A stretch of DNA of 64,000 nt. It comes from Guillardia theta CCMP2712. Its lineage: Eukaryota > Protista > Cryptophyta. Below are positions 30,001 through 54,000 of the stretch, one piece after another. The notes under the pieces are model-generated. The model made no database searches and had not been told where the DNA came from. It saw only the letters and a list, made by a program, of their open reading frames with translations. Each line of letters starts with the position of its first letter. Within the stretch, counting starts at the first letter, position 1. Location: contig NW_005434634.1 of assembly GCF_000315625.1 (NCBI RefSeq), positions 458,531-522,530 on the forward strand, written 5' to 3'. The position numbers and the translations under genes were made by a program.

Positions 30001-33000
30001 ATTCTTATTCATCTCTGGATATCGCTGTAAAGTCGGTAATCACTCAGTTCATGGAATTGTGTTGTCTGGAAGTCAAATCCGATGTGCGTTGCCACCCCTC
30101 AAATATGGCAAACATACAGTCCAATTGGCACTGAAAGCTACCATGAATATCCTTTGTAGTCAAGATTTGTTAGTGATAAGAAGGCCACACATTGTTTCAT
30201 TAAATCCAAGTTTGATCATGCCTACGACGAAAGCAATCACAGTTATGGGCTTAAATTTCGAGTCATCTCTTGAGGGGCATTGCCTTCTAAATGATTTACG
30301 ATCAGAATTAATGCATACTGAGAGCTCAACTGTAGTGCTTTGCATAATAAGATCATTCATGGACAAGACGAGTAGTATCCGAATCTCTTTGGGTGGTTTT
30401 GAATCAAATTTTGTTGAATTGGTGTATCTGTATCCTGAGTTGCTTTCTGTTCTCCCAAGAACGGAAATACATGGTGGTGAATTGATAAGCATTATCGGGT
30501 CAAGATTCTGGAACTCTTCAAGGATCGAGGCAAGGTTCGAAAACTTGAGTCAACCTGGAACATTTTACAGTTCAACTTTGATCCTTGCAAACTCGCCCTT
30601 TATGAAGGAAGCTACAGCTTTTGAACTGCAAATATCTTGTGAAGATATGCCTGTATCGAATAAGATTTCCATGATATACTTGGACGACATGTTTCCTACA
30701 ATTCATTACATCATTCCGACTTCTGGTCCAGTGAGAGGAGGCAACTTAATCACTATCTTTGGTTTGAACATGAATAACACACAAATGCAGGTGCATTTCG
30801 GCAACATATCGATCACTCCAATCGAGCAGTGCTTTGCATATGTAGTGTGTGTCGTTCCCCCTAATTTAGCAGGAAGTATCTTTCTACGTCTAGTAACCCG
30901 TAATCAAGCCCTTTCGAGAGCAGCTTCATTTGTTTACTGCTCAGATCCCCACGTAATGTATATTCGGCAAAGTTCTCACATGACTGGCAGTGCGCAGAGT
31001 TTACGTATTACTGTTATTGGACGAAATTTCTCTCCTCTTTGTTCTCTGCGTTGTAAGGTGGGCAGCCAACAAGCAACTGAAGGGACCATTCTGAGCTCCA
31101 GTCTTGTGCTTTGCTCAGTGCTAGAACCAACAAGGGGAAATTCAACTTTGTTCTTGTCTCAAAGTGATCACGTTTACTTTCAAACTTCTTTTCAGGTCCA
31201 GTTGCGCGATATTTTCAGATTTATAAAACCAACTAGAATTCCAGCTGCTGGTGGTGTATTGATTACAATTGGCTTAGAAATGAGTTTTCTTGAACAGAAC
31301 AAAGATATTCGATTGAAAATTAACCATGAAGAACTAACATGCGAATGGACAAAAGACACGACATTTTGCATAACCCCTCCATCAGCAACAGGACTTGCAT
31401 ACCTTGAAATGAACATACATCGAGATGGAACAAAGGAAGTTTCTGTTTCAAGACCTCTTCTTGTAATGGAAGTTGACATCCCAATTGTAATTCATTGGAA
31501 TCCCAAAGTTTTGTCAACAGAAGGAATGAGTCAGGTTCAGTTTCAAGGTAGTGGATTCAAAGCAGACTTTGTATACCACTGTCAATTTGATGAAATTGTA
31601 GTTGCCGCTGCCGTTTACAGCTCCACTGCAATTGGATGTGATTCCCCTTCCCACGAACCCGGAATTGCACAGCTAAATTTATGGTTTGGAGCTTTACATC
31701 TTCTTGCAGATGAAATTCGATATGTCAAGCGACCAACAATATTGAAGACATCTTTTCAATCAAGACGTGAACTTCTCGTCTATTCTCACGACTTCTCAAG
31801 CAGTGCAGATTGGGCCTGTAGATTTAGAGGGGACATGCTGTTGTCCGCTTCAAGGACAGGAGAGACGACAATAAAATGTCTGGTTCCGATCACTCTGATA
31901 GGAAATACAACAATCGAAATATCTATGGATGAGACAATATTTAGCGAGCCAGCATCCATTTTACTCGGGCCAGTGCAAAACGAAGGTAGAATATCTCCAC
32001 CAAAGGGGTCCATACATGGGGGATATGATGTTAAGGTGTATCTCCAAGATCGATCACATATCGTAAAGAACGTATTTTTCAATCGAAATATCCAACCTAT
32101 CGTTAAAGTGGAAAGAGATTACGTTGTCTGCAGAGTACAACCCACCAGAATGCTTGGAGTGGTGCAGATCGAAATTGAATATTCCGAAAGGGTCACTTAC
32201 GAGAGCGATCTCCTATTCGAGTATATACCTGATCTCTTGGCTCATTCCCTCTTTCCATCGTCTGGGCCATCAACAAGCAGCAGTGAAGTAGCTGTCCGAG
32301 GGGAGTACCTGCCACTCAATGGATCTGTCAAGTGTGTCTTCGGTGGTCAAGATACCACGGGGCTGGTTATGACATCATCATATATGAGATGTATCACGCC
32401 AGTATCTAGACAGGTAGGAACCATACCTTTCTCCTTGAGGATAGGCAAGATAGCCGTTGGGACTCCCCTAAAATATGAGTTTGTAGAGGCTCCACAGGTC
32501 TTTGGGATGATTCCCTCGCAGGGCCCAGCGGAAGGGGGCACCAGGGTACTGCTTTATGGGGCAGGCTTTGATGTGGGACAAGGAATACGCTGCAAGTTTT
32601 TTGAAGATGTAGGAATGTCTACCTATCATTCGTCAACTCTCATTCAATGTAGAACCCCCCACTCTATCACTGGAAATTCTACATTGAGACTTTGCTTTGG
32701 CAAGAAACCTTGTTTTGAAACGAAGTTTGTATTTTGGTTTGAACGAAAGCAAAGCATGAATAAGTCAAACGAAAACCTGAAATTGCCATCATCGAATGAA
32801 TTGGAGTCAGCAAAATATGAAAGCAACAATTCAAAGGGTTTCCGAAGAATTTCTGTGCTGGCTGTCTCCCCAACAATCGCAATCTGGGGCAGTACAAAAA
32901 GTGTCAAAGTTGAATTGACGGAATCATGGACACCTGGCAGAGCGTTGTGCATTTTTGGAAATTTTTCAGTTTTAGGTAATGCAGTGACAGAACGCCTTAT

Positions 33001-36000
33001 CGATTGTCCACTTCCAACAATGTTTTTCTACAGTTTAAGTTTCTTTGTGGTCTTTGAAAACAAGATTTTGCAACCAGTTATTCAATTAAAGCAAGGTCTT
33101 CCACCAAGATTAAAACAGGTATTTCCATCTTTTGGTGACAAGAATGAAAAGTTATTGGTATCTGTCTGGGGTACGCACTTCGAATTATACTCTACGTACG
33201 TCAAATTTGGAGTCGATTTGGCGGAGGAAGTTTCTGTGCTTTCCTCGTCGCTCCTGATGTGCAAATGTCCGCAGTCCCAACTCGAAGGTAAAGTATTACT
33301 GTCAATCAGTACGAATGACCTGGATTACTTCTCTTATGATGTATCATTTACATTCATGCCTATGCCAAGAATATTCTCGGTGTTTCCTACGTGTATACCG
33401 CCTTCAGGAGGAGTCGAAATATCAATATACGGAACGAATTTCTACGCACATGGGTTAGATTTAAGTGTGTTGATCGGAAGACAAGAAAGTTTTGCAAATC
33501 TGATTACTAGTACCATGCTTACGAGCGTTTGCCCAGTTTTGAATGAGTTTGCAAACCTCTCAGTCACATTGAGTGTTGGAGACGCCATGATCGAAGGAGA
33601 AAGGGAGCCGTTACATGTCTGTAATGAGTTGAGCTTGTTGCGGGTTGTGCCAACGATCAGCTACGTGGGCAATCAGGTGCTTCTCACACTCTATGGCACA
33701 GGCTTCCGCGCGAAAATGCTCATACTTGCTGGGAAACGAAGACTGGATTGCGCAGTGAATGATCCTCAATCTGCAGATTGCCGAATCGACGCTCTTCCAG
33801 TAGGCAACATATCTCTCCATATTTTGGGATCAGGCACAGAGCCAATTCAGTATAGAATTCTTGAGCGACCAACGGTGTACGCTGTTCATCCTACGGGGGT
33901 CTCGAGCACAGAATCCAGAGCGATTACTATATTTGGTCAAGGTTTTACTGAGCACATACAGGAGATTGGACTTCCTGGATGCAAAATGTCAGAGATTGAT
34001 GAACTTGATTTCGTTCTACTCAGTTCAACCATGCTTTTGTGCCATGTTTCACGTTCTCAGATAGGACAAGTGGAACTCGGAAAGATGCTGACTAACCTTC
34101 AGCAATCTTGTCTTTCTCTAGATGGATTTCCTGTAACGCCAGCAATCACGCAGGTAACAGCAATCACCATTGCGTCCCGCACCACAATCACACTCCGTGG
34201 TAATCAGTTTTCCACCTATGACTCCTACTCATGCAGATTGGGAACGAAATCATATGTTTTCGGGGAACTCATTTCTTCTTCAAAGATAAGATGCGAGTTT
34301 CAAAATTTGAGACCTATGAATTACACTTTGGAGCTAGGTAGTAACGGGAGTTTCGTTTCTCTAGATCAATTTCCGTTCGTTTTGAGCAATCAAAATGTGT
34401 ATTTGCTTCCATCGTGTGGAGTTTGCAGTCCAAAGATGACCATTTCCATCATTGGACCAACTTGGGACAAGCTGTATTATTCAGCCAAATTCGGAAGAAG
34501 AGAATCACTGTGCCAAAGGAGGAGCAATGAGATTCTTTTGTGCAATGTGTCATGTTTATTTGAGGACTCAGTTGCAAGATTAGGTGTTACTATTTGGGAT
34601 GGAGAGATTCAAAAAGTAACGAATGCAATGGAATTTCTCAATGTTCTTCATAGACAATCCTTGGAAATCAAACGTTGGAACATAGCGAACAAAAGGCTTT
34701 TAAATTTGATGGGATCTTTCACGGTCCCCTCTGAAAGCCTGAGATGTTCATTCAATGATGAATTGAGCCTTCCGTCACTGGTTTCATCTTCCTCTATCAT
34801 ATGTAAGATTCCTTCCATCCTATTACATGTGATACCACTTGATTTTCAAATAGTCGATATCAACTGTAAACTGAGCAGTAACAAGGTGACCATCATGACC
34901 CATAGGTCACAGCCTGCAGTAAAGCTATTCCCTACGAGACTTTCAAAATCTCATAGTTCAGTCACAATTGTTGGTACAGATTTTAAAAAGAGTGACGGAC
35001 TACACTGCATTTTAGGCGAGAAGTACATGGTGATGACTTTGCAAGCATCAACACTGATCGTGTGCAAATCTATGCCACACCGAAATGGAAATATTACCTT
35101 TCGGTTCATGCAAGAGAATGAGGTCCTAATAGCTAGCAGTATACTTGTAGAGGGCAATTCAAATATTACCATCGATGCAATAATACCATCAAACCCTTGT
35201 TCAGCTGCAGAAGCAATAACAATCAAAGGGACCTGGTTTCAACCACAACAACCACTAAAATGCAGTTTTGGTCAGAAGACATTCGATTCAGAATTTATTT
35301 CTAGTACTGAGTTGTTATGCAATCTGCCTGTGAATCCTTGGAGTTGGATGACTGAATTTAACATCAAGAGCTTTCAAAATATTTCATCTAATATCGACTT
35401 GAAATTTGAGTGTAAAGTAGATCGATCTGATCTGAGCATTTTTCCTTTGTATGGATTACTTGGAAGTGATACACTGATTAATGTAATGTCAAGAGCAAGC
35501 CTAGAGTCAGTCACAGGCTGCAGGTTAGGATCTAGTATCCTTCATGCGACACAGATTTCGTCTTCACACGTTCAATGTGTGCTCCCTTCTTGGTCGGACA
35601 TAAAGATCTATGAATTATTCTTACGACTACAGTCAGAAACCTTTGTGCCAACCGCAACACAGTTTCACATATTCGAGATCTCAAGGATTGAACCGTCATA
35701 TTCTCCAGTGGGAAGTGAATCACTGGTGACAGTCTTTGGATCAGGTTTTCCAAATAGGTATGACTTGACTTTCAAACTAGACTCGACTGTACTTCGTCCA
35801 TTATCGATTGACTCGAATTCGATAAGATGCTTGTTCCAAAATACATTGTCTGAAGGCATGTACAACATCGAGTTCAATCTATCGAATAAGGGATGGCAGA
35901 ATACTGGATTAAGATTTCGTTCGATGTCGATGGTAATGCTCAGCATTGACCCAAAGAGAGTAATATCAGGAATTGATCAAACCATTACTATATATGGCTT

Positions 36001-39000
36001 TACTTTCTCCCTAGAAATGAATATGTCTTGTATTTTCGACCAAAACTTTTACTCCGTCAGTATATTGACTAGTAGTGCAATCGTTTGTCGCACACCAAAG
36101 GATATGGCTGTGTCGACTCTCCTCACTTTGAGGTCCAATACTTATCCAAATTTGGTATCAAATGGTCTTCTTCTCGATGCTTCAATGAAGCTAATATTTT
36201 GGAAAATCTCCCCCACTTTTGGAATCATTAGGAAAGAGAGCATTGTTCAAATCTTGGGAGAAAATTTTCCTTTAGACCTTGCGCAATCTTCCTGTAAGCT
36301 TCGTCAGGCCAAGGGATTTGTACAACATTTATCTTCCAGTGAGCTTCAATGTCGAATTACTCCATTGAGCGCATCGTCAACATCATTCCAAGTTTGGTTT
36401 GCAGGTCACTCTGTCTTTAATGAAACATTCATGATTTCCGAAAGTGTTACGATTCGGAGTGTTTGGCCTACTTTTGGATATCTCGACCATGTAATTACGG
36501 TCACAATTTCAGGTGGAAATTTTCCAGAGGGTAGAGGTTTGACGGTCACGATCGGGAATTTTCCCGAGATTCGTGCGGAAAATGTTTTTCCAGAGACTTC
36601 AAATTTGATTGTCACGACGTTAAAATGTAGCGTGAAAGGTCTGTACGACTTGGCAATTTACAAACAAAACGTATTGCTTGATAACTTTGAATCTGCCTTT
36701 ACATGTTTACCTATCTCTGCTGTCAATCTTATCAATCCCAGTTTTGGACCACAAAATGGTGAACAAATCGTATCAGTTTACCTGGAAGAGTCTGTATCTT
36801 TGCAAGAGATGCCGCTTTGTAAATTTGGTGATATAAGCTCCGTTGCCGCTGTTGATATCTCTGATTCCAAAAAGATAACTTGTAGGTCACCTCCTCAGTC
36901 TAAAGGTGTAGTGAATTTTACAATCCAAATATCTTCGATTGTACTCGAATCGAGTTTGAAATTCTTGTACGGAGGTTCGCACATATGTAATGTATCCGAT
37001 TTATCTCCAACTGTTGTGCTTTCACATGGGTCAAACGTTCTGATCTTTGGAAAATTCATAAGTGACAATGTAAAGGTTGAGTTCAATTCGTCTTCTGCAG
37101 TGTCTGTGAATCACATCACCTCATCTCAAATTTCAGCTCAATCTCCATACCTTTCTGTAGGGTTGGTAAAGGTACGCTTCTACTGCAAGGAGATTCTTCA
37201 TGAAATTCTAGACATATTCAGTATTGAACCCATTCAATTGGAAGAAATATTCCCTCTCCAGGCAACTGAAATCGGCGGAGCCCTGATTCATGTCTACTTG
37301 AGGAACGTATCCTCAGACTTGAACGGTTTGCTAGAATGTTGCTTTGGGAATCGAATTACTCCCATCACATTTGCTGCGAGAAATTTGGTTACTTGCTTCT
37401 CACCACCACACAATCCTGGTATAGTTGAGTTTTTTGTCTCGGTTGGTGGAAATCAGGTTTCTCTGACAAAGCTAAAATTCGAATTCATGCCCTTGGAACA
37501 GATTCAACTAAACTCTAGCACAATTGCTTGGGCAGGGGGCGGAACAAACTTCAGTTTTGTTTTCCAAACTCATGATTCTTGGGTTTGTTCCTTTGGGGAA
37601 ATTCTCGTTAGTCCATCATTTATTTCTACCACCGAATTCGTGTGTTTATCGCCTCCTCACGCTCAGGGCTGGGGTGTTTTGTCCGTCATTTTCAAGGGAT
37701 TACCAGTTGTATCTTACCAAATCTTGTATGTTTTACAATTTAAAGTCGAAAAGATTAACCCTCAAGCAATTCAGGATTCATCTTCGATTTCTGTCCTCGG
37801 TTCTGGTTTCCAAGATCTGAAAGATATCGTTTATTTCTGTCAATATTCAAGCAGGAAGGTAGATCAATATGAAACACCTGTTGCGAATCTCAATTCCAGC
37901 AAAATCTCAATGCTTGCTACTGTAGTTCATTCTAGCTTGCTTCTTTGTCCTGTACCAATTTTCTCGTCAAAGCTACCATATTTAATAATTACGTCGAATC
38001 TGCCATCAGAATTCAATTCTGAATTCGCTTTTGAACTGCAACGATCAAGTATCATAAATGTCATTCCATCAGTTGCTCCTGTAAATGGCGGTGTACGAGT
38101 TGTAATTGTTGCTGATTTGGTTGCTAAAGAGATTCCGTCATGGTGCAAGTTTTTGAATATCAGAAGAAAAGCTCTTCTTGTTTCAAGCTCCAAAATTTCC
38201 TGTGTCTGTCCTAAATATTTTGCTGGAACTGTTCCTCTTTCACTCGAGACTGAATCTGGCTTAGAGTCGAAAAGCATACCGTTCTCCTACTTTTCCTACC
38301 CAATACTTCGTTCTATCACTCCGAACTGTGGCCAAACAACAGGAAATCAGTGGATAACCGTTTCGGGACAAAGTCTTTCGCCTTCTTTGAATGTGACATG
38401 CAAATTTGGTTTGACGTCCAGCCCTGGAACGATCAAATCGAGTTCTCAATTTTTGTGCAGAAGTCCCCCTTCCAGTGCTGGCAACGTATCACTCTCTGTG
38501 TATATTCATGATTTATATTTCTACACTTCTGTCCAATATCAGTATCAAAACTTCTTGACAATTCGATCCATCGATCCAAGTAAGGGTCCTGCTTCAAAAG
38601 AATTCCTTGTGACATTGTTGAACGATAAGTTTCACAATTGCTCATCGCTCAAGTGCCGATTTGGTTCATCCTTGAGGGATCCTGTGCGAGTATACGATTC
38701 AATCGTTGTGTGCCAGAAACCACCAACGTACCCTGGTGCCACTGCCGTCCAAATCGTTTCTGAAATTGGCATCAATTCCACGACAGTCATCTTCGAGGGA
38801 GAAATCGATACTGTTATCACCGGAATTTTCCCACAAGCTGGTCCGACACAAGGCAATACCATTCTATCAGTATTTGGTGAGGGTCTCAATTTGGCAAAGT
38901 ACTGCACCTTTGCGACAAATTTGCAAAGTGATCAAGGATCAACAGGCGAAATCAATACGAAAGCATCGGTGATTTCATCTACAATTGCTACTTGCATGAC

Positions 39001-42000
39001 TCCTGCACAACCTCCTGGAACATGGACTATTTCCGTTTCGATTTCAAACTCATTTTTTGCGGATCGACGTATCAATTACACCTATTATGTAAATCCTGTG
39101 GTCAGTCACATTGTACCGAGCAAAGTCTACAGGAACCAAATACTAACAATCACGCTTCTCGGGAGAGGATTCCTCCTTGGATTTGATCCGATTTGTATGG
39201 TGGGAGGGATTCAGTCAAGAGCCCAAATATTTTCGAGTGAAACAGCGCTGTGCACAGTCCAAGGATTATCTCTCGGGATCTTTACAGTAGAATTCTCGAA
39301 TAACTTCCAAGACTTTACAAGCGACCGTCAAACACTTACTGTAACAGAATGCTTTGGCGAGTGTGCGAAGCTTCAAAATTCCGATGATTCTTGCAGGAGA
39401 CACAGGGGAGCTGCAAGAGACGGTGGATTTTCCTGGATAAGATTATCACCATCAGCCTCATTGATAGATGAATGGTATTCGGGGATGACCTTGCACATTC
39501 TGTCCAATCAGGGAGCTGGCCAGTTTGTTCGAATTTCATCGTATGATGGAAGGGAGCAAATAGCAAGATTCAGTCCCCTAAATATTAAATGTGGCTGCTC
39601 CCTGCCATTATCTGCATTTGGGGCAAGGAACCGCTCCAATGACATTCCTTGGGAAGGCACTTCACAGTTGTACTGGTTACCCGACGGCTCATCAGTCCCC
39701 GGCCATTCACTCGATCCGATTTGCAGCGAATACTTGATTTCATTTGAAGACTGTTATTCGCATCTTGACTTTCGATTTAATTTGGATTTCATGTCTCCAG
39801 GATTCCTTGTAGAGCAATCATCTTTTTTTTACGATAATAAGTCTATCTTCTATCAAAATGTCAGTACACTTTACAATTTTCCTCCAAGAAGCTTTGGAAA
39901 AGCTGTTGGGAGTGTTTCCTACGGAGCTAGAACTATCTTGAAATCAAAGCCTTTGTATTATTCAACGGTTGCAGATGAACCTGACCATAAATCTCTCAAA
40001 TGCTTGGTACAAGACGAGAATGTTTGGATAGACTCTTCAATCATCAGATTTGTATGTCAAGTCAGAGATCAACATGGAAGATCTCAAATCAAATCTCAGG
40101 AATTTTTCTGGAAACTCACGGTTGGAACACAAAACAAGACTGGAATATGTACCTTCAGTCCTAAAACAGGTCTGACCATTGGATGCAATATTATTATTGA
40201 AAAACAATGGTTCGGATTACAAAATATCACCACAGCATACATCACTGGAACGCTGAATGGCAATGATGTTTCTGTTGGCTCTGTGCACTTACAGTCTGTC
40301 GGGTCCATTGAAGAATCATCAACCTGGAAAGCATTCTTGAAAATTCAATCTGATGATATTGTTTTTGGAGCTAATTCATCTCTAGAATTGTACTTTGCGC
40401 GACCTTGGCATTCTTATCCACTGATGAGTGGTGTTGTGTTCGTCCTTTTTGACTCTCAAGTCGTCAACTGTAATCTTGAAGCTGTAGAATGGGATAATTT
40501 CTATCATGATCTCTCTACTGCAGTGCTTGCGAGGGACGGAGTATTACAGGTGTACTTCGCAAAGAATGTTGACGTTTCTCAAAGTCTGCCGTCAGAAAAC
40601 GGATCTCCGAATGTTGAAAGGATTGCGAAATTTTACTGCACGTTCAAGTGCAATTCTAGCACACGTATAAATGGATATGTTGAAAGTGCAATCGACACCA
40701 AAAACAACCTTATCATAGGTGGCAAAAGGGGAGAATTACCCTTGATCATTCAAAACCGATTCGAGTCCACCAAAAATAGTATTGAACAGTCAAAGTCATT
40801 GCAAAATGGTCTGTTGGTCAGTATTTCAGGTGAGGACCAGATGAGAGGAATATTTGCCGTCGCCGACTCAAGCATCCTCTTTAACATTCCGGCACTCGCT
40901 GGACCGAACTATATGCAAGTGGCATACGTGCGAATTTTTTTGGTGTACTCGAGAAAGATTGTCGAGCTCAATCCTCCTTCGAAAGATGATAGGTTGAAAT
41001 GTGAGTCCACAGATCCATCAGTAGCTTCAACCATATCAGAGAAAAGTTGTGATTTGATATTGACTGGAAATGAGTATGCTGGATCAAAAGATCTTAAGCT
41101 TTTGGTCACATTCACGCATGAATTGTTTGGGGTGTTCACAACAACTGTGCCTTTTGTTGTTTGGTTCCCAGTCGCTTTGAATGTTCTATCTCCAGTAGGA
41201 AAAGGTGGGGGACTTGAAAATAGAATACAAATTCGGTCGATAAAGGGTTTTACGAATGACTGTGAAAATGACGAGTTGAAGTCTTCGTATGAAACTGCAA
41301 AGGTGAGATCGCAAGTGACCTTCTCAACGGGAGTGGATCTAGGGGTGGATGTTGGATCAAGGTTAATTTTCTTCCTTGATGATGAATGGGTAACGTATAG
41401 CACGAATCAGAGCCAGACGACTGTATCTGTGAACAACGGCATTCTATACATCTCTGATCGTTACCCCAATTTTGGAAATCCTCTTGCATTTCTCGTCATT
41501 CCAAAGACATTTTCTCTGGGAGTTAAAATCACACCTTTGGAAGTTGAGGTTCTACAGGCCAGCCAATCATCAATCGTTGACTTGATTCTGTTTGCTCCAA
41601 ATAGGATCAACATATATTTCTCAGATAACACCACTTTCTTTAATACTTCGGAACAGATCATATTGACTGGTCAAGTACAGCAAACTGTGTTCTCAGTTTC
41701 TGCGCAACAATATTCAATATTTGGAGTTGCAATTTTAGACGATGGTATGACCTTTGATGTCGGACCAAATAACGGCCTCATAATTCACGAGAATGGACCA
41801 TTTGGGAACCTCAAAATAGTCCCAGATAGCAATGTCTTTTCAGTTTCAATGTCGTCTAATCAATCTGGAACCTATTCGATATCTGCATACATTGAAAAGT
41901 GTGGAAAACAGTTGGTTTCGTCTGCATTCTTGATCACGTTCGATCCATCGACAGTAAAAAGTATACAAATAATATTCGAAGGACCGTTGAGCACAGCTGA

Positions 42001-45000
42001 TATTTATACATTAGTCGTTGATCCTTTTGATCCATTAGTTATTGCAGAACCTCCTGTTTGCAGTAGCCTGCAAATAAGAAAGTATTTTATAGAATGGGAA
42101 GATTTATCATCCCTGTGGCTGAATCGAGATGATACTCGAATCAGTCTTTTCATACAAAACAACGATACGATTTTGGATGAAGGAAACTTTACTTTCAGAT
42201 GTAAAGCAGAGGGAAGTGCTTCAATTTGCGCAATCCTTGCTTTCATGGGAAGGACCAAACAAACTTGTGTGAAAGTCCTATGCATTTCATCCTTGTACGT
42301 CGAAATTCTTACTGTTCCTTGGCCATCTCTCTCTGATAACTCAATTTTTAAGAGAACCCTGAAGCCGATTGGAATAAGTAAAGTTGCTCATGAGAAGTTT
42401 TTGGAGTCGCTGCAAATCAACGCAAGTTTAACTTCGAGTTCATTAACACGTCATTGGATTTCTCACTTAGTTTCTCAGAAAGAAATTTGTGATGTCCGTG
42501 AATGTAGACTTGTGCGAATCTCTTTTGAAATTTTGGATCCTCTCAATCTAACTTTTGTCAGTTCCTTAGAGGGAGATAATCAAAGCTTATTTATGCATAA
42601 AACTGTTGTCAACATAGAATCCAGAACGGTAAAACTTGTTGGGAAATTGTTAGTGCTGTCAGCTGGTGCTTCAGTCGAATATCTGGTCTCACCAGCGTGG
42701 GAAATTCAAGTCTTATCATCTCCTGCTTCCGTAATTGGTCTTGATCTTCAATTTCCAGAATTATTTACAGGAATCAAAGGATCCCAACGTCACATTCTTT
42801 GCATAGTAGAGATCGAGGATGAATGTGAATTTGTCAACAATAGTCCACAATACAACATTTCAGGCCGAATCACTGGGATAGTAACAAATCGAACTGTTTG
42901 TTTGAACAGGCTTCAAATGCCTACAAATCTTGTCTCTGCTCACCTGAATTTCTCTGCATCGAATCCGGACAGAATTATGGTATATGAAGACGGTATGGCA
43001 ACACTTCTAGAATCTCATTTTGATAGGGTATTGATCAAAGGATACATGATGAACAACATACAGGATGAAATTGGAGTATGGGTTAATCTCAAGGCAAACC
43101 AAGGAGATTTTGATATCGGGAATATGTATGGACCACCATTTTTATCCCTCTCTTCAAAAGACTTCGTTGAGGTGCCAGTATACTTTCGAACAGACACTAT
43201 GAAGAGATTCGGAGCAATCCTTATCGATGTAGTGTTTGACACACAACAATTGAAATTTGAGAGCTGGAACGTGGGAGCCTCGGTAAAAAAGAGTCAGATT
43301 TGGACAAATCCGTACTACATGGATGAAAGTTCAGTCCCTGTATGCAGAATTTTAGCAATATTGAATGATTTCAAAGAAGACAACGAAGGATATGTACATG
43401 TAGTTGATTTAAAGATGATACCTTCGGTCGGTTACAAAGGATCTTCAATACAAGTCATCGTTCAAGAAGCGGTCTATCGAAATCAGTTGACAGCTTTTGA
43501 ATCCCCTCAGAGTGACATGTACTTGACTAGAACTTTGTCAATCGCTGGAAATGTATCTATTCCGGCATACAGAGAAGGAATCAGTGTACTTCGTATAGCA
43601 CACATGAGTGATTCTTGCGCAAACTTTCCTTCAAATCCAATGATCGTTTGTGGAATTATCATAGATGGAACTGGAGTCTGTTGGAATGGAAGCACAACGA
43701 TTTCTTTGCGAGGCGCAGATGGGTTTTTAGTACCAGATGATTACCATTGGATTCACATAACTGTTGGAATACAGCAAGTCTGTGGAATTACAGTCATGAA
43801 ACAGTTAATCTGTTGGAATTTTGTCACAAACACCATCGAGACTCGTGCAGGTGGTTGGAAGTACCTCTCAAAAGAAAATGAGAATTTCTGTGCAATTGCC
43901 AACCAGGGAATAGTAGAATGTTGGAATTCTTCGTTATCAGATTGGAACGTGGTAACTTACACCAGTTCATGGGAGATTCTTGCTGTTTCTAATGCTTTCC
44001 AGTGTGGCATTGACAACAAACGATTTTTGTCTTGTATTTCGGATACGTCGATGCAAATCGACTATGAAGGAGAATACTTTGATCTTATCAATGACGAAAA
44101 TTATCTTTGCGCCATCAACAATCAGGCTATGATTGTTTGTTGGGTAAACCATGATATTCAAAAATCGTTACTTCTAGACATGTCAGACTGCTTGCATTTA
44201 TCTTCGGCAAGTCCATCGAGGTTCACTGCAATTTTGAGAAACGGATCTGCATTTCTTTTCCATTTTGATTCTCTTTCCAGAACATTTTCTGCGACACCTG
44301 TTGTTTCTCTTGAGTTGCGCTGGGGCAGTATCTCAATAGGGGACCCGCTTTCGTGCGGAATTTTGACTAATGCATCGGCCATTTGTTGGAATACTTGTGG
44401 CGAGACACTTCTTAACGAGGCATTGCATGGAAAATTGTTTTCAACTGCATTTGTGGATATTGACCTGCAGTTCCCTTTGGTTGCGAATCTTCCTCCATCC
44501 AATCAATCAAATTGTTCATGGGTCAGACGTGTGCGAGGAAATGTCAACGCTGATTGCAAAATTACTGCACTAGATCTTGAGTTCTTATTGTGGTTTATCC
44601 ATGGTGTTCTACCTAAATGCTCAAATGATATACCCTGTGTGGGCAACCCATCAGATTCTCTGTTAGAATGCAGCCCAACATACAGCGTCTGCACTGGTAG
44701 GGGGGGGACACATCTGATGGACATGGATATGGATGGATTCATCACGATAAGAGATTCTGAACTTCTTGCTTCGACTCTTATTGGGACTACCTACATAGTT
44801 CTGCAATTTTGGATGCAGGAGATTGCTGGAGCTCAACCCATGTTGAAATTCTGGGTAAGTCTTGTTGATGTAAATCTTGATTCTCCAACAAACAAAACTG
44901 CATCAGTTTGGATCGAGACTAAAAATCTATACAGCACTGCATCTCAGACAATGTTCGTTGGAATTCAGGAGTCACCAGGAACTTGGCTTACTACGATTCA

Positions 45001-48000
45001 ATATCAAGATGCAAGTCAGGATGTCGGACTCGTCCTTATAGTAGAGAAAGATAACCAAGGAGTGGTGAGACAGGACACCTACCAAGAAAGCGAAATTTTG
45101 AATGGAACAAGCTTTATTCCATTGGTGTCTGTCAATGAATCAATAACGAGTGCAATTCAGTCTCAATTGAGATACCATAGTGTATCGACAGCAGGAAACA
45201 TGCTCTCAATATTTCTCCAAGCAAAAGACAACTTTGGGACTCCGCGGATGGTTGGCGGAGATCTCATTCAACTGGAAATATCTGCACGGCACATCAATGA
45301 ATCTGTTTGTGTTTCAGCAAGCAATGATGAAATCAAGTTGGATCATTGCGATATGAATGGATGCTTGGTGCAACTGTCAAGGAATGACACTTGGACAACA
45401 GTATGCCCAATCAACTTTGACTCCTTCGAGCTGAATTTGATTTGCAAATCCCTCAGTCTCTCTTCGGCACATTTTTTTTCGCAAAACATTACATACAATC
45501 TATCACACGAATCTACATATCCGTTATCTTGTAATGGAACTGAATCTTACATTTCTGATTGCATTCGAGATTTATCCATGATTCAACCATGCATGATGAG
45601 TGCTAGGATTTTTGCATGTTGTCAACTGATGAATGAATTTAGCATCGAGAAGAACATACAACAGGAAGTGATTGATCACAAGAATGGTTCGTACTCAATT
45701 TATGCCTTCTTGACCCTGAGTGCATCTTACTCGATCATTCCATCGATTAATCATCAACACATGACTAAAGGTATACTTGTGAATGTACTTCCCGCCAAAG
45801 CGTGTGCAGAAAGAACGATAGTCTATGGAGCAGGACTAACTTTGAATTTCGCTGGAAGTTGCGGTTCCTTCTCAATATTGGGACGTGACTCATATGGAAA
45901 TCTAGTTGATTTCGAATTTGGCGACATTCGTATCGAGCTATCTTTGCAGGGAAATATAGTACAGTCTTTGACGAAACCAGACGCGGATAACTACAAGAAT
46001 TGTGACTGTGAACTATTGTATCCTTTAGGAAAGGGCCGCATCATGAGCAGATATTTTCTAACTATCTCAGGAGTCTATGGCATTGGAATTCATTTGAATC
46101 ACTCGTTTTTTACGCAATACGATTCAGTTCTGCAAATTAAAGCATCAAATGTATCACCTTTTCAGACATTTGTTGAAATACAGTCGTTCATTCTCGTGGG
46201 AGAAAGGCAGTTAGTATATATTCATTTACGAGACGCATTCGGAAATTTGATTAAACAGCAAATTGTGAATCACAGTTTGTCTGTAGAATTGTATGGTCCA
46301 TCATATATTGAAACAGAATACACTTCGTCTGACTTGGACAATGGGACGTCAACCTATCAATTTGTGGCTACTGTGACTGGCAGATATCAACTTATTGCAA
46401 CTCTTGATGACCAACCCATTTCTGGAAGTTGTGATCAACCATGTATTTTGATAGCTTCACCAAACCCTGTGGCAGATTTCAGTACAGTACGTGGAAACGG
46501 GTTATCAGTTGCAACAGCTGGACAAATGTCTAAATTTGATATCATAAGTAGAGATCAGTATCTCAATTTGCGAACATCTGGACAGGACCAATTTATTGTA
46601 GATATTTATCCGTTGAATCCACAGACAACAACGTCCTCTATGCTTCTGCGCAAGGTCACTTATTACACAGATGGTCAGTACGTCGCTCAATACTCTCTGA
46701 CAAAATCAGGCCAATACAAAATACGTGTTGCTTTGTATACTTCAAACGATTGTTCAAACTTGACTTGCCAAACTATTTTGCAAAACAAAACTCTGTCTGG
46801 GAGTCCTTTCGACCTTCAAGTCCATCCATCAGATATCACTTCTCCCGAATCCAGTTTCATACATGGGAAGGGCGCTAGCATGTACTTTGGAGCATCTGGA
46901 ATCGCAGGCGAATTCAATGAATTTCTCATTCAAGCCATCGACATATTTGGGAACATTCAGGAGAGAGGTGGTAGCGAATATTTCTTCCACTTGATGGAAT
47001 ATCCTTGTTGCCTTTCAACGAACTTTGATCTCATCCCAGCGTGCTGTGCAGGGAACATGGGACCCAAGATTTCAGACATACCACCACAATGCAGTAATCT
47101 TTCCATGTCTCTTTATGGAATTGAGACCTGTTTAGAAGGCTGCACAAATACTTCTTGTATGGACAATCTTCATTGGAAGAGTTGTCCAGTAGACAACTGC
47201 TCAATCATAAGCACCAATCGCTTCGGATTTGTATATGGAAGCTTCAGAGACTGGGGGACTGGAAGCTATACACTCTCCTACCTTGTTACCACTGCAGCAA
47301 AATACATCTTAAGGGTTTACATGAATGTATCTAAAGATGGAAAGATCACCGCACAAGAGGTAGGTACATACAATCAAATTTCTTCTTCAGCTGGAGGTCT
47401 AAACCAGCTAAATACTTCCACCATGTCGACAGAATACTCTACTGAATCACATTCAAGCCCTCTTGTCATATCAGTTGCACCTGCTGCAACAAATTTTCCA
47501 TCTTCAAGGGCTCGAGGCCAAGGCATATCTTTTGCGATTGCTGGTGTAAATACAAGTTTCTTTATAGATACACGAGACCGTTACGGAAATCTCAAAACTG
47601 ATACAAAAGATAAGTGCTGGGAAATCAAGATCAGAAATTTCCAAAATACGGATCCCATCATTGTGAGTGATATTAGTGGTACCAGCGGCGGTTCGTATTT
47701 GGTGACCTATTTGATCACTGTTGCTGGTCAATATATCTTGTCCGTAGGATGCTACGGTGTTCACATCATGCAAAGTCCATTCCAAATAGAAGTAAAATCT
47801 GGTCCCTCTGGAATCACTTCATATCCGTTTGGCACGTCTCTCAATCAATCTAGAGCTGGCGATGTTTTTGAATTTTTTATCCAAGCAAAAGACGACTTTG
47901 GCAATGCTAAGACAGTGGCTGGTGATGAATTTCGAGTTCTGCTTATTCTCACAACAAGGAAGGTTCGGATCTCATCGAACGTCACAGACTTGGGACTCAC

Positions 48001-51000
48001 AAATCTCAGTAGCTGGTCTACTTACGTAGGCTTGCAACCCGGAAAATACCTTGCAGAGGCGATGATAACAATATCTGGAATTTATGAAATGTGGATCTCT
48101 GTGCAGCCCAAAAGCTCTGAAGGAATATCTGCAAACTGTCTGGAAGACTGCTTGACACTTGACGGTCTCTCATGTTGCTTAAACATACAGAACAGTCCGT
48201 TTCCTCATGTAGTTCTGCCAGCATCCAGGTCGACTCAAGAAAGCATATTGATAACAAATGCATCAATATTTCTGCCTCCATCAGTTTGGACTGTTGGTTC
48301 AAATTTGACGATGCAAATTCAATCAAGAGACAGATTCGGAAACAATATAATAACGGAATCCATACTTGCCGACAATCGATTGGGAATAGTTTATTCATCC
48401 TTGAATTTTTCAGCCAAAGGGCCAGACAACAGCGCTCTTGTACCAAGAACCTACGTCGATCCTTGCAGAGAATATTATCAGGGTGTTTGCTCCCTGCGTG
48501 CTCCGACTGTGCGGCACGAGCCTTGGAACTTCTGGATCTCTGATCTCTGGGGGCCATATGATTTGGGCAACGGGCTGTCAGATATCATGATCTACGTGAC
48601 GGTAGCGGGAAACTATGAATTATATGTCATGGACACAAACGGTTTGATGTTACAGAATGTACCATATTCAATTTACATGCAACCTGCCATAATTGCATAT
48701 GAAAATTGCCTATTGATTTGTTCCGAATCATGTTCGGCTTGTACCGAAGATAACCTCAACAAGATCAGGTTTTGTGGCTCATCAGATTTGAAGAGTCCGA
48801 CAGCTGGCGACACTTTTTCGTTCAAAATACAGACGAAGGACTATTTTGGAAATGATCTTACCTCAGGGAGTGCCAACTTCGTTATTCTTCTCTCAACTGT
48901 TTACTCGAGTCCGCCAAAAATATCTCACGGCAAATTTGGAATGAACACAGGTTCAGATCGAGTATTTGGATTTGAGAATATGACTGAAGCGTATGCCGTA
49001 TCGAATTCAGATGGAACATATTCCGTATTTTCTTTTTCAGAAAAAAGTGGCGTTGCTTCTATGAGTATTAAAGGCTTCGACGGCGTTAGAGAGGTGTCCA
49101 TCCTGGGAAGTCCATTCCAACTCTTGATTGAACCGTCAACAAGTCAAGCAAATAATACACTTGCAGATGGGGAAGGATTAATACACTCAACAGCTGGGAT
49201 ACTAACCACGTTTGTTGTACAAGCAAGAGACAAGTTTGGAAACTTTCGAAATAGAGGAGGAGATCACGTCGAAGTTTACGCTATGACAAATGATTTTCAA
49301 TATAATGCTACGGTAATTGATTGCATGGACGGAAGTTACAACGTGTCGTACATCCTGACGAGAAGTACATCATACTCGATTCACGTCAAACTAAATGGTA
49401 AAGCCATTTGGAATCATCTGACAACAAGCTATGATCCATGGCAAGTCCAAATTTCTGCTGCACCAAGTTTTCCACCATATTGCTCACTTGTTGGAGAAGG
49501 AATTTATGGTGGAAGATTACTTGCGTTGATAACTTTTACTATTGTGACTCGTGATGAATTTTCGAATATCAGAACCAACGGTGGTTACGGAAGCATTGAC
49601 CAGTTCAATATATTCCTGGTGGGCGTGGGGGGAGCCGCTGAATCAATGAATACAACAATTTTTCCTAATATATTTGATCCTCACGATGGACAATACTTGG
49701 CTTCTTACAGGACAACTGTAAGCGGGACATATAAATTGTATGCATACCTTGATTATAACTGCCCTCCTGGGTTCCAGAGCCAAGCAGACTGTGGCAATCG
49801 TCTTCAAGTACAAGGAACACCCACATATGCTTATCTTCTTGCAGATAATATTTCAGCCTCACTCTGCTATGCATTTGGCACAGGATTTCATCGTGGTACA
49901 GCTGGAAATAAAGAGACATTCTACATTCAAGGGATAGATATCAGAGGCAACAAAAAGACTCAAGGAAGTGAAATTTTTGTTATTACCATGACTGCAACCT
50001 TCGATCAGAAACTTTCCAATAGATTCATATCAAGTTCCATCAACGATGGCACTTTTGCTGCTTCTTACAATTTCACTACTTCAGGGGATTTTTCGATAAT
50101 CATAACTTTAGCAGGAATCCACATCTCAAATTCCCCTTCAATTGTCAAGGTAGACCCAGCTGAGATCTTTCCACCGAATAGCAGAATGTTTGGAAATGGC
50201 CTGTCGTTAGCCACTGTGGGATTGGATTCAACCTTCTCACTTCTTTGCAAAGACAAATTCGGTAATTTGAACGATCTTTATGTGCAGTATCCTGATTCGG
50301 TATTGCAATGCAACACATCTTTTGAGGTTTTGGAATATCGGTATCCCAGATGGAAGATAATCAATTCATGCAATTACACCCTGCATGTTTCGGCAAAACC
50401 AAATCAACGTGGACTTTATCAAATGACTTTCATGTCCACCAGAAGCGGCGAATTTCTTCTTCAGATAACATTTCAGGGTGCTCATTTAAGTGGAAGTCCA
50501 TATTCACCAGTAAAGATCACCACACAAGCATTCGATGCGCAATATAGCACTGTTGTTGGCCTGGTGCCTGCCTATGCAGACGATTGGTATGCAGATGTCA
50601 GTGGGATCATGGTTGTAGTAAGACCCAGCTTTGTCGTGGTTCCTCAAGATGTATATGGCAATCATCGCCCATGTCCAAATCAATGTGTCATGAAAGTGGT
50701 TGTATATCAAAATTCAACGCAGGCTTTGATTCAAGACAACAGTGCTGTTTCTTTGGCGTCCAATCCATTGGACGTTTTTACAATCATGCTTCTTGCAACA
50801 ATTCAGGGGAACTATATTGTGTCTATCACCATAGATTTCAAGCATATTTTGGGAAGTCCCTTCAATATTTTCTTGAGTCCCGGTAGAGCATTTCCATTGA
50901 AAGTAACCACAGAGGGATCAGGATTATATTCGCCTCAAAACAATTTGATCGCCAGGGCTGATGACTTATATGCAATTTCCAAATTGACAGCATACGACAG

Positions 51001-54000
51001 ATATTCTAACCGCAAAACTGTAGGAGGTGAAACTTTCAATGTTGTGATAACGCACATATCGAATAGAAATTTGAGACTACCCTCAAAATTAGTAGACCAT
51101 GCTGATGGCACGTACTCATTGTTTTATAATTGTACAAGAGCTGGAAATTATACAATATGGATAATGATGGACATATTTCATGTTGCTAACAGCCCTTTTC
51201 TTCCGACAGTTTATCCTGGTGTAACCAATACCAGAATGACTATCGCATTGGGAAGATCATTACAAGCTGCGGAGGTAGATTCTCTCACAACGTTCGTGAT
51301 TCAAGCCCGAGATCAATTTGCCAATGATCAAATAGGTTGTGGCGATTTGTTTGATATAGAGGTGTACGGTGGCCCACTATCACAACAACCCTCGTACATT
51401 TGCGATGGAAATGAAAATGGTCTGGCAGCGATGTCTATCTTTGATCCAACTGACCTCGGAAATGGTAAGTACCGAGTATCTTTCATAGCAAGTGAAATTC
51501 AAAGGTACAGTATTTGGATTATGCAAAACGGCATCCACATTCATGGAAGTCCTTTTTCTACACAGATGTTCGAAGCTTCTCGAATTCCTGAACCAAGTCA
51601 GTGCTTTGCTGCCGGTGACGGACTCACTGGAATCATTGCAGGAGTCACAGGAACGTTTACAATACAAGCAAGGAATATTTTTGGAATCGATCTCACTGCT
51701 GGCAATATCGATTTTAAGGTTTCAGTACAATCCTCTACCGGTGTGTACCTGATCGCGTCAAACGCAATAATTTCGTACATAGGAGCATGCAAAACTCCAC
51801 CAACTCAGCCTTGCGGACTTGGACTGTATGCGGGTCGCTTCAATGTAACTGTGAGTGGAATCTATCAGCTGTACGTCACATTGCAGTCGCAAAATGTGTT
51901 GAATAGTCCGTTTCAGATCAACGTCCTGTCAAATAGATCAAATGCAAACATGACATATGCTTCCGGAGATGGCTTGAATGCGGTCGAGGCCGGAAGGTTA
52001 GCTAATGTGTTTATCACTCTTATGGATTCTTTCAAGAACCTTCAGACAAACCCAGCGTTTTCAAACGATTTTGTGGGATGTGTCCTAAACCATCAAAGTT
52101 TAAATGTGAGCAAAACTTCCCTTGCTGTTTCCATCTGCCAATACTCAATTACAAAATCTGGTCAGTACAAATTGGAAATATATTTGAACCAAATCCCCAT
52201 AAAAATGAGTCCTATCAACATCATTATAGTTTCTTCTTGGCCATTTTCTGGAACCTCTTTGATACTCGTAAATTCTTCGTCAATAACGACTGTATCTGGA
52301 ACAACGAACAAGCTCGACGTTATTTTGGGTGATCAATATGGCAATACAATTCTCCGTGGAGGTTATCTCAAACCACAAAATATCACTATCAGGTTTAGCG
52401 ACGTATGTGCCATCCAATGGTTACCAGATGTCTGTCACCTTCATTCCGGGTACATTCAAGATGTTCTTGACTATCAGAATGGAACCTATAGTGTACTGTA
52501 CACAGCAACAGCCAGCGGACTTTACACCTTGTCTGTGAAAGTAGGGAATTTTGACATTTTGAAAAGTCCTGTATCATTATCAGTCAAGCCTGCTGCAATA
52601 AATCCTTCATCAAGCTATGCATATTGCTCGGGAAACTCGACAACTTGTGGACTGTATTTTGCAGTTGCAGGAACACCTACAAATTTTTTTGTGCAAGCAG
52701 TGGACAGGTATGGAAACAGGATCTCGATCGGTGGCGATGAAATTCGTGCCATAGTCAAGAGTTCCAGGTATTTTTTCGCAGGATTTCAAGACATGAAAAA
52801 TGGAAGTTATAATTTTTCCTACATGATTACGCAAAGTGCTCTTTTCATGATTGACATTGCTGTCATAAAAGTGCAAGGTGTTTTGCTTCCCTTGCCTTTA
52901 CCTGTCAAAAATAGCCCTGCACAAGTTCTTGCGTTTCCTGCAGAAATCCCTTCTGCAAGTCAATGTGTTGTATATGGCAATGGCTTATTAAATGGAACTG
53001 TGGGAACACAAAGTACCTTTATCATTGAAGCCAGAGATGTCTATGGAAATCGCAAGACAAAAGGGGGTGACTCGTTTTACGTGGTTTTGGCGTTGAACCC
53101 AAAACCTCTTGATAGCCCATACTACTTTGCAGACTTGATTGACCGTAGGGAGGGAACATACCGTGCAAGCTACACTCTCACTCGGTCGGGAAAATACTCC
53201 CTACAAATAGCGTATAGAAAAAGGGATTTTCCATTTGATTTGGATCCTTTGAATGGCAGCCCACTCAGTATCTGGATGGCTCCCACTTCAACTGATGCAA
53301 CCAATACATATCCTGCTGGAGACGCCCTTTCTGTTTGCACTGCAGGCATTTTTGGTGTATTCAAAATTGTTATGAAAGATAAATTTGGGAATATTCAGCT
53401 ATTTGGTAGTGATATTGCAAGCTTTGTCCTGAGCGGTCCAGCAATAATTGAAGGAAGCACCCAGAACAGCTCTTTAGGAAACGGGATGTTGCTGGGACAA
53501 TACTTTGCTACTGTCACAGGCAATTACGTTTTAGAGATCAAATTAAATGGAGATTTCATTCGGGGAGGAAGATTCAAGGTAAGGCTTCTTCCAGCAGAAA
53601 TATGTGCATTTCAATCTGAAGCCGATGGAAATGGCCTCGTCAGTGATATATATGTGGATGATCGTGTTTCATTTGAAATTTCTGCCCGAGATATTTACGC
53701 CAACGATCGAACCATAGGGGGAGATAGTGTTGTCGCGAAGGTTTACAAGTATATTGATGAATATGCAACTCCAATCTTGCTTGAATATGATTCGACATTT
53801 TTTGACAGCCAAAATGGAAAATACCTTGTCACATATTTCGTTACGCAAGGAGGACAATTTCGAATTTTTGTCATGGTTGGTGAAAACCATATTCGAAATA
53901 GTCCGTTTAATGTCACATTTCATCCAGGACAACCTTATCCACAAGCGTGTACAGTGAGTGGAGATGGCATCAAAGGAGGCTTGGTTCACGACGTTTTGAG

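Follow-up and report, generated by a model that had tools for sequence, protein, structure and literature searches.

Can a cohesin and a dockerin, the two partner modules of the bacterial cellulosome, sit in one chain of a eukaryotic protein, and could they bind each other there? This question is raised by a window of 64,000 nucleotides of the cryptophyte Guillardia theta CCMP2712 (the whole stretch of DNA that was analyzed, contig NW_005434634.1). An earlier note, made from the letters alone, had read in it a cohesin-like domain, seven RCC1/crinkly-type repeats, and a pair of dockerin-like Ca2+-binding loops and had proposed that the two outer modules form a clasp around the propeller or cross-link neighboring chains. 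We found that a single exon, for part of the ectodomain of a giant surface protein rich in cysteines, encodes three modules in a row: a cohesin-like domain, a propeller with seven blades, and a dockerin-like module. All three modules lie in the same frame of an uninterrupted open reading frame (ORF) of 10,494 codons. The cohesin-like domain is very probably a remote member of the cohesin superfamily, and the dockerin-like module is an enlarged variant of its class. That the two modules clasp each other is a tentative reading, and we weigh it below against its alternatives.

A remote cohesin-like domain and an enlarged dockerin-like module in one chain

In Pfam, the best family match for the first domain was Cohesin (PF00963), with an E value of 0.036 and 14.7 bits over profile positions 15 to 58 only, which is below the gathering threshold of this family (24.1 bits). 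A direct search of the whole genome with PF00963 gave no match. With a cohesin profile made from Chloroflexota alone, the domain reached just 5.6 bits and ranked third in an hhalign tile scan, which shows how divergent it is. This profile was too narrow, and therefore archaeal and Myxococcota cohesins were added. The resulting hidden Markov model (HMM) comprised 81 domains from the sampled Chloroflexota, Thermoplasmatota, and Myxococcota genomes, each above the PF00963 cutoff. It matched the domain with 22.7 bits (E = 3.8e-9) over profile positions 14 to 118 of 140; the maximum of 5,000 shuffles of the domain was 9.5 bits. Across the five large ORFs of the window, this site was by far the top one for the 81-cohesin HMM. 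Moreover, BLASTP of the domain against one verified Myxococcota cohesin (L143) gave an E value of 6e-6, and the closest single cohesins were from Myxococcota (Table 1). These Myxococcota cohesins sit in giant ORFs themselves, with lengths of up to 11,115 and 4,615 residues.

The features of the ESM-Atlas pointed to the same family: of the 100 nearest clusters, 68 belonged to the Cohesin-family set, and the top score was 0.92, with 188 features in common. The same protein contains dozens of TIG and filamin sandwiches, none of which matched Cohesin with Pfam or with the 81-cohesin HMM. The best tile of the hhalign scan, at ~41858 to 41990, was considered as a second cohesin and was rejected: its ESM features were those of a Big_2/NUP210-type Ig domain, and the 81-cohesin HMM gave 1.0 bit. 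By these features, a Big_2/NUP210-Ig-like stretch extends from 41738 to 42340, upstream of the cohesin-like domain.

A model of the domain was calculated with AlphaFold2 (AF2) with the 81-cohesin alignment as input; it had eight long strands and a mean predicted local distance difference test (pLDDT) score of 72.6. For comparison, a cohesin is a flattened sandwich of ~140 residues with 8 or 9 strands. When this model was searched with Foldseek, ranks 1 to 23 were all cohesins. VIA gave a Z score of 12.1 to the cohesin-like module of Clostridium perfringens (2jh2) and of 10.8 to the noncellulosomal cohesin of Archaeoglobus fulgidus; unrelated sandwiches (integrin calf/thigh, AgI/II) reached ~10.5, within ~1.5 Z of the cohesins. 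An Atlas shape search with the cohesin-like model returned bacterial cohesin/dockerin proteins. Thus, the cohesin-like domain placed at 43103 to 43565 by the earlier note was upheld by the 81-cohesin HMM and the ESM features, and the structure comparison is consistent with it.

The dockerin-like module consists of two F-hands and an insert and has six cysteines overall. Both Ca2+-binding loops proposed before were found exactly in place, loop 1 being N-V-N-A-D-C-K-I-T-A-L-D and loop 2 being D-M-D-M-D-G-F-I-T-I-R-D. Positions 1, 3, 5, 9, and 12 carry oxygen ligands (N/N/D/T/D in loop 1 and D/D/D/T/D in loop 2), position 12 is Asp in both loops versus the Glu of canonical EF-hands, and each loop is followed by an amphipathic helix that ends in Gly. 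The Ala-Leu pair at positions 10 and 11 of loop 1 resembles the recognition pair of the C. cellulolyticum type. Dockerin_1 (PF00404) was the sole Pfam family on the module, with an E value of 0.0037 and 17.8 bits, again below the gathering threshold (22.9 bits), and the match was split into two stretches because of the 38-residue insert between the repeats. Pfam families of EF-hands or carbohydrate-binding modules (CBMs), the assignments that the earlier note had named as speaking against its reading, did not match either the cohesin-like or the dockerin-like module at E values up to 10. The Pfam comparison suggested in that note thus returned the two expected families as best matches, and returned both below threshold.

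As with the cohesin-like domain, ESM features agreed with Pfam: 69 of the 100 nearest clusters lay in the Dockerin_1 set. We also built an HMM from 30 archaeal dockerins. It matched the module with 32.7 bits, repeat 1 on repeat 1 and repeat 2 on repeat 2, the best shuffle gave 12.2 bits, and the module was the only real match in the giant ORF. A MAFFT alignment with 12 archaeal dockerins (20 to 29% identity) covered the module over its whole length and had invariant Gly and Asp columns at the loop positions. The insert with its four cysteines, because of which the module is not of canonical size, had been overlooked in the earlier note. The starts of the two loops are 60 residues apart, which does not match the canonical dockerin, a compact module of ~60 to 70 residues with a short linker between the repeats. 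We call the module dockerin-like, an enlarged variant that is probably braced by disulfides.

The propeller between the modules

The seven repeats between the two modules were confirmed as six blades with a C-x9-C motif plus one degenerate blade, in line with the repeats of ~35 to 45 residues of this type of propeller. The motif is followed by Trp in five of the six blades and by Ile in the fourth. Blade 6 (FTAILRNGSAFLFH, ~44222 to 44263) has no cysteines and was poorly modeled. A phmmer search with a 599-residue stretch as the query against 1.84 billion representatives (E ≤ 0.001) gave 2,175 matches, all of them via query residues 180 to 435, the best with an E value of 2.5e-32 and 22% identity. 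The eight top matches that were scanned were RCC1_2/WD40_RLD proteins, one of them also with an SLH domain and FG-GAP repeats, and the closest relatives of the propeller by sequence were bacterial RCC1_2 proteins. Pfam's own RCC1_2 model reported no match on the propeller sequence. Neither a cohesin nor a dockerin was present in the 150 best bacterial relatives of the propeller that were scanned.

With 33 phmmer matches as the alignment, AF2 reached a pLDDT of ~90 over residues 200 to 370 and 430 to 450. The ACR4 CRINKLY ectodomain (7a0j) was first in Foldseek with an E value of 1.2e-10, followed by Physcomitrella CR4, UVR8, HERC2, and RCC1. The assignment as a seven-bladed propeller of the RCC1_2/CRINKLY type is solid. 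This alignment covered the propeller alone, which left the cohesin and dockerin parts with pLDDT values of <50; strands in the dockerin region of that model were rejected as spurious, caused by misaligned propeller rows. Only ~8 residues join the cohesin-like domain to the propeller. On the other side, the linker to the dockerin-like module has ~40 to 45 residues.

Relatives in the genome and in nature

The genome has 87 Mb on 669 contigs. Self-similarity searches and the custom cohesin and dockerin profiles revealed neither a second cohesin-like nor a second two-repeat dockerin-like module in it, and no paralogue of the cassette was found in the genome. The other weak Dockerin_1 matches in the genome were rejected as dockerins; they are EF-hands of calmodulin and of a channel, and calmodulin and voltage-gated channels are both encoded in this genome. 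A single dockerin-type F-hand, DLNNDGVVNATDLLYV (G000:C4:141378-141458, minus strand), scored 26 bits on PF00404, which is above the cutoff. The long ORF around it runs into voltage-gated cation-channel-like transmembrane repeats, and this F-hand may be an extracellular Ca2+ site of a channel.

The phmmer search against the 1.84 billion representatives gave propeller relatives only and no orthologue. Homologue searches with the giant query plus region and with the cohesin part alone gave none, a metagenome contig scan gave no relative of the cassette, sequence searches of the PDB gave nothing meaningful, and NCBIfam had no matches. Three Myxococcota cohesin protein fragments, inspected for a cohesin-propeller-dockerin source cassette, showed no propeller or dockerin nearby. 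Among the bacterial propeller and cohesin relatives searched, there is no evidence either way for horizontal acquisition of the cassette.

Near-identical DNA is present in freshwater and lake metagenomes. Freshwater contigs are 95 to 100% identical to the window over 42500 to 45500, with differences spread along the stretch; they point to a naturally occurring related strain or species. Among the 40 differences listed for this related strain (~95 to 99% identical) over 42500 to 45500, 16 were synonymous and 24 nonsynonymous, which speaks for mild constraint only. The Ca2+-ligand positions 1, 3, 5, 9, and 12 of both loops were unchanged among the listed differences.

Possible pairing of the two modules

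The sole cohesin-like module and the sole two-repeat dockerin-like module of the genome are separated by 320 residues of the same chain. Because each was found only once in 87 Mb, a cognate self-pair is favored, in which each module would be the partner of the other. In a propeller, the ring is normally closed by contact between the first and the last strand. With propeller ends that should meet and linkers of ~8 and ~45 residues, the two modules would easily reach each other within the chain, a contact that a high local concentration would promote, and Ca2+-dependent binding would therefore most likely be intramolecular. Such a clasp would loop out the propeller and stiffen or shorten the stalk at the hinge, and loss of Ca2+ or high tension would open it. 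We regard a cognate self-pair that forms a Ca2+-dependent intramolecular clasp as possible rather than probable. The further-reaching proposal, that this is the first cognate cohesin-dockerin pair in a eukaryote and acts as a Ca2+- and force-gated clasp around the propeller at the hinge of the giant protein, a mechanical fuse or length switch of a putative mechanosensor, is doubtful. A complex prediction of cohesin, dockerin, and two Ca2+ ions gave ipSAE values of 0.25 and 0.27 (mark, 0.34), which count neither way.

Several observations weigh against a functional cohesin-dockerin pair or against the homology on which it is built. As noted above, neither module reaches its Pfam threshold. Because the AF2 model of the cohesin-like domain was steered by the cohesin alignment, its fold is consistent with the homology call and is not a separate proof of it. 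The calmodulin of the genome gets 27.9 bits on the 30-dockerin HMM, and therefore the score on this HMM does not by itself separate a dockerin from an EF-hand. Cys replaces the usual Gly at position 6 of loop 1, and the module is atypical in its four-cysteine insert, which none of the 12 archaeal dockerins in the alignment has. Expression was barely detected, with 2 RNA reads in ~6% of one run. Finally, eukaryotic cohesins such as TMEM132 are without a known dockerin partner (PMC6030884), and a cohesin fold thus need not imply dockerin binding.

The last point leads to the alternative that survives best, which we consider rather unlikely: both modules may be true homologues that have lost their mutual binding. 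The cohesin-like domain, one of ~60 or more Ig-like domains in the protein, would then serve as a spacer or in adhesion. The dockerin-like module would be a disulfide-braced Ca2+ hinge that only stabilizes the local structure, and the propeller would bind a ligand as in the receptor kinase ACR4. This would agree with the TMEM132 and coherin cohesins of eukaryotes, with the strong divergence of both modules from the Pfam models, with the insert and the Cys at loop position 6 as departures from canonical dockerins, and with the relaxed constraint in the related strain. However, it would then be an odd coincidence that the only two such modules of the genome are 320 residues apart in the same chain.

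This coincidence would be explained equally well if the pairing was cognate but in trans, the dockerin binding the cohesin of a neighboring chain to give head-to-tail dimers, chains, or a surface lattice, as the earlier note had also considered. Prokaryotic proteins with both modules are thought to form multiprotein assemblies (PMC9012536), and we found the two modules adjacent in archaea and both families in Atlas clusters. The ~45-residue linker and the closed propeller ring, however, should allow binding within the chain, which would normally outcompete binding between chains. Pairing in trans therefore is unlikely and the less likely variant compared with the within-chain clasp. A chance or generic resemblance, in which an ordinary Ig-like or CBM-like sandwich is followed by a generic EF-hand pair, is very unlikely, since the subthreshold Pfam scores, the poor result with the Chloroflexota-only profile, the cross-scoring of calmodulin, and the closeness of the integrin and AgI/II sandwiches in VIA are set against an 81-cohesin HMM score far above the shuffles, the BLASTP match to a verified cohesin, the lack of any EF-hand, CBM, or Ig family at E values up to 10, the failure of all TIG and filamin sandwiches of the same protein to match Cohesin, and the agreement of two independent methods (Pfam and ESM features) on the same two cognate families.

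The host gene

The cassette lies at the junction of two long arrays. Upstream, a Pfam scan of the window ORFs found dozens of IPT/TIG domains, which reach to ~40 kb; from ~45.4 kb onward, it found SRCR, more than 20 Filamin repeats, and GEX2-type Ig domains. The ~195 residues between the dockerin-like module and SRCR (44786 to 45370) matched no Pfam family at E values up to 10. The ORF that carries the cassette is preceded by four more long ORFs on the plus strand, which span 499 to 28364. A putative GT-AG intron at 24526 to 24573 (48 nucleotides) holds the sole in-frame stop between two of the long ORFs, and after a second one at 59812 to 59857 (46 nucleotides), the filamin-like frame resumes; the 3' ends of both candidate introns are pyrimidine-rich. 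Because these candidate introns would join the long ORFs, the whole gene is predicted to have about 19,700 codons or more, far beyond the 10,494 codons of the ORF. The GC content of the window is ~40%. A run of N (X in the translation) at ~26000 to 28360, inside the ORF from 24558 to 28364, marks a gap of the assembly in the giant gene and pulls the apparent GC content there down to 0.29.

Table 1. Features of the cassette and its host gene (positions in the window) and related loci in sampled genomes (genome and contig named)
Feature	Position	Strand	Remarks
Host ORF	28361..59845	+	10,494 codons; part of a larger gene, predicted from ~499 to beyond 59858
Cohesin-like beta-sandwich	43103..43565	+	profile-aligned core ~43148-43471; modeled strands to ~43564
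Propeller, seven-bladed, RCC1_2/CRINKLY type	43586..44392	+	placed by phmmer, AF2, Foldseek, and motif positions
C-x9-C blades (n = 6)	starts at 43649, 43781, 43889, 44003, 44108, 44354	+	
Linker, propeller to dockerin-like module	44393..44512	+	one short low-confidence AF2 helix, H455-462
Dockerin-like module	44513..44785	+	
Loop 1, as quoted in the earlier note	44537-44575	+	GNVNADCKITALD
Loop 1, 12-residue loop	44540-44575	+	NVNADCKITALD
Helix 1	44576-44605	+	LEFLLWFIHG
Insert	44606-44719	+	38 residues, four cysteines
Loop 2	44720-44755	+	DMDMDGFITIRD
Helix 2	44756-44785	+	SELLASTLIG
Myxococcota cohesins L125/L140	G874:C183		closest to the domain of the window
Myxococcota cohesins L133/L143	G689:C12		closest to the domain of the window
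Adjoining Thermoplasmatota cohesin/dockerin	G381:C130 1545-2096		
Adjoining Thermoplasmatota cohesin/dockerin	G444:C107 1437-2539		
Adjoining Thermoplasmatota cohesin/dockerin	G540:C103 3673-4767		
Adjoining Thermoplasmatota cohesin/dockerin	G405:C76 673-1634		

Significance and comparison with known systems

Cohesin-dockerin pairings are among the strongest noncovalent pairings of proteins and a workhorse of synthetic biology. The cassette is a concrete test of whether such a pairing works in eukaryotes and whether it works as a Ca2+- or force-sensitive lock within a chain. Should there be no binding, the cassette would still illustrate the reuse of adhesion modules of the prokaryotic type in giant surface proteins of protists. 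What appears to be new is that a eukaryote has both modules, each found once in its genome, on either side of a CRINKLY-type propeller in the middle of a giant TIG/Filamin surface protein, and that the dockerin is enlarged and bears cysteines. The earlier note had overstated the novelty: a cohesin and a dockerin in one chain are common in prokaryotes, both archaea and bacteria (PMC9012536), and eukaryotic cohesins had already been described (PMC6030884).

With the cellulosomal type I pair of Clostridium thermocellum and C. cellulolyticum, the modules share the fold family and the F-hand pattern. Unlike that pair, they have no enzymes, scaffoldin, or cellulose context, their Pfam scores are below threshold, and the dockerin-like module is larger; the affinity and mechanical strength of the bacterial pairs may or may not carry over. 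The propeller is like those of ACR4/CR4 CRINKLY and RCC1_2 proteins in having seven blades, an extracellular location, and a conserved cysteine pair per blade. In contrast to ACR4/CR4, it has no TNFR-like domain or kinase, its blade 6 is degenerate, and the identity is only ~15%.

Among eukaryotes, the closest parallels are the TMEM132 family and the coherins of choanoflagellates and sponges, in which a cohesin homologue is likewise part of the ectodomain of an adhesion-type protein. These homologues have no known dockerin partner, and the TMEM132 study leaves the partners of eukaryotic cohesins open (PMC6030884). The order in TMEM132 is a conserved region, the cohesin, and three BIG domains, with no known dockerin, whereas the cohesin-like domain described here follows Ig-like domains and is itself followed by the propeller and the dockerin-like module. 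In the scans of the window ORFs, no TMEM132 family reached its Pfam threshold; a subthreshold match to Ig_TMEM132_4th (E = 7e-4, 19.9 bits versus a cutoff of 27) lies at ~40850 to 41170, ~2 kb upstream of the cohesin-like domain.

Among prokaryotes, some proteins of ANME archaea combine a dockerin with several cohesins (PMC9012536), and the same paper, citing Haimovitz 2008, reports that archaeal cohesin-dockerin pairs bind specifically. In the sampled Thermoplasmatota genomes, we often found cohesin and dockerin domains above the Pfam cutoffs as direct neighbors, some of these pairs in a single ORF, and ESM-Atlas clusters of bacterial proteins contained both families. The nearest solved structures to the cohesin-like domain are the noncellulosomal cohesins of C. 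perfringens and A. fulgidus. The cassette thus is most like the noncellulosomal proteins of A. fulgidus, ANME archaea, Thermoplasmatota, Myxococcota, and the GH84 toxin complex of C. perfringens, which have a cohesin and a type-I-like dockerin in one polypeptide without a link to cellulose degradation. It differs from them in its eukaryotic host, in the propeller between the modules, in the four-cysteine insert, and in the giant TIG/Filamin/SRCR protein that carries it.

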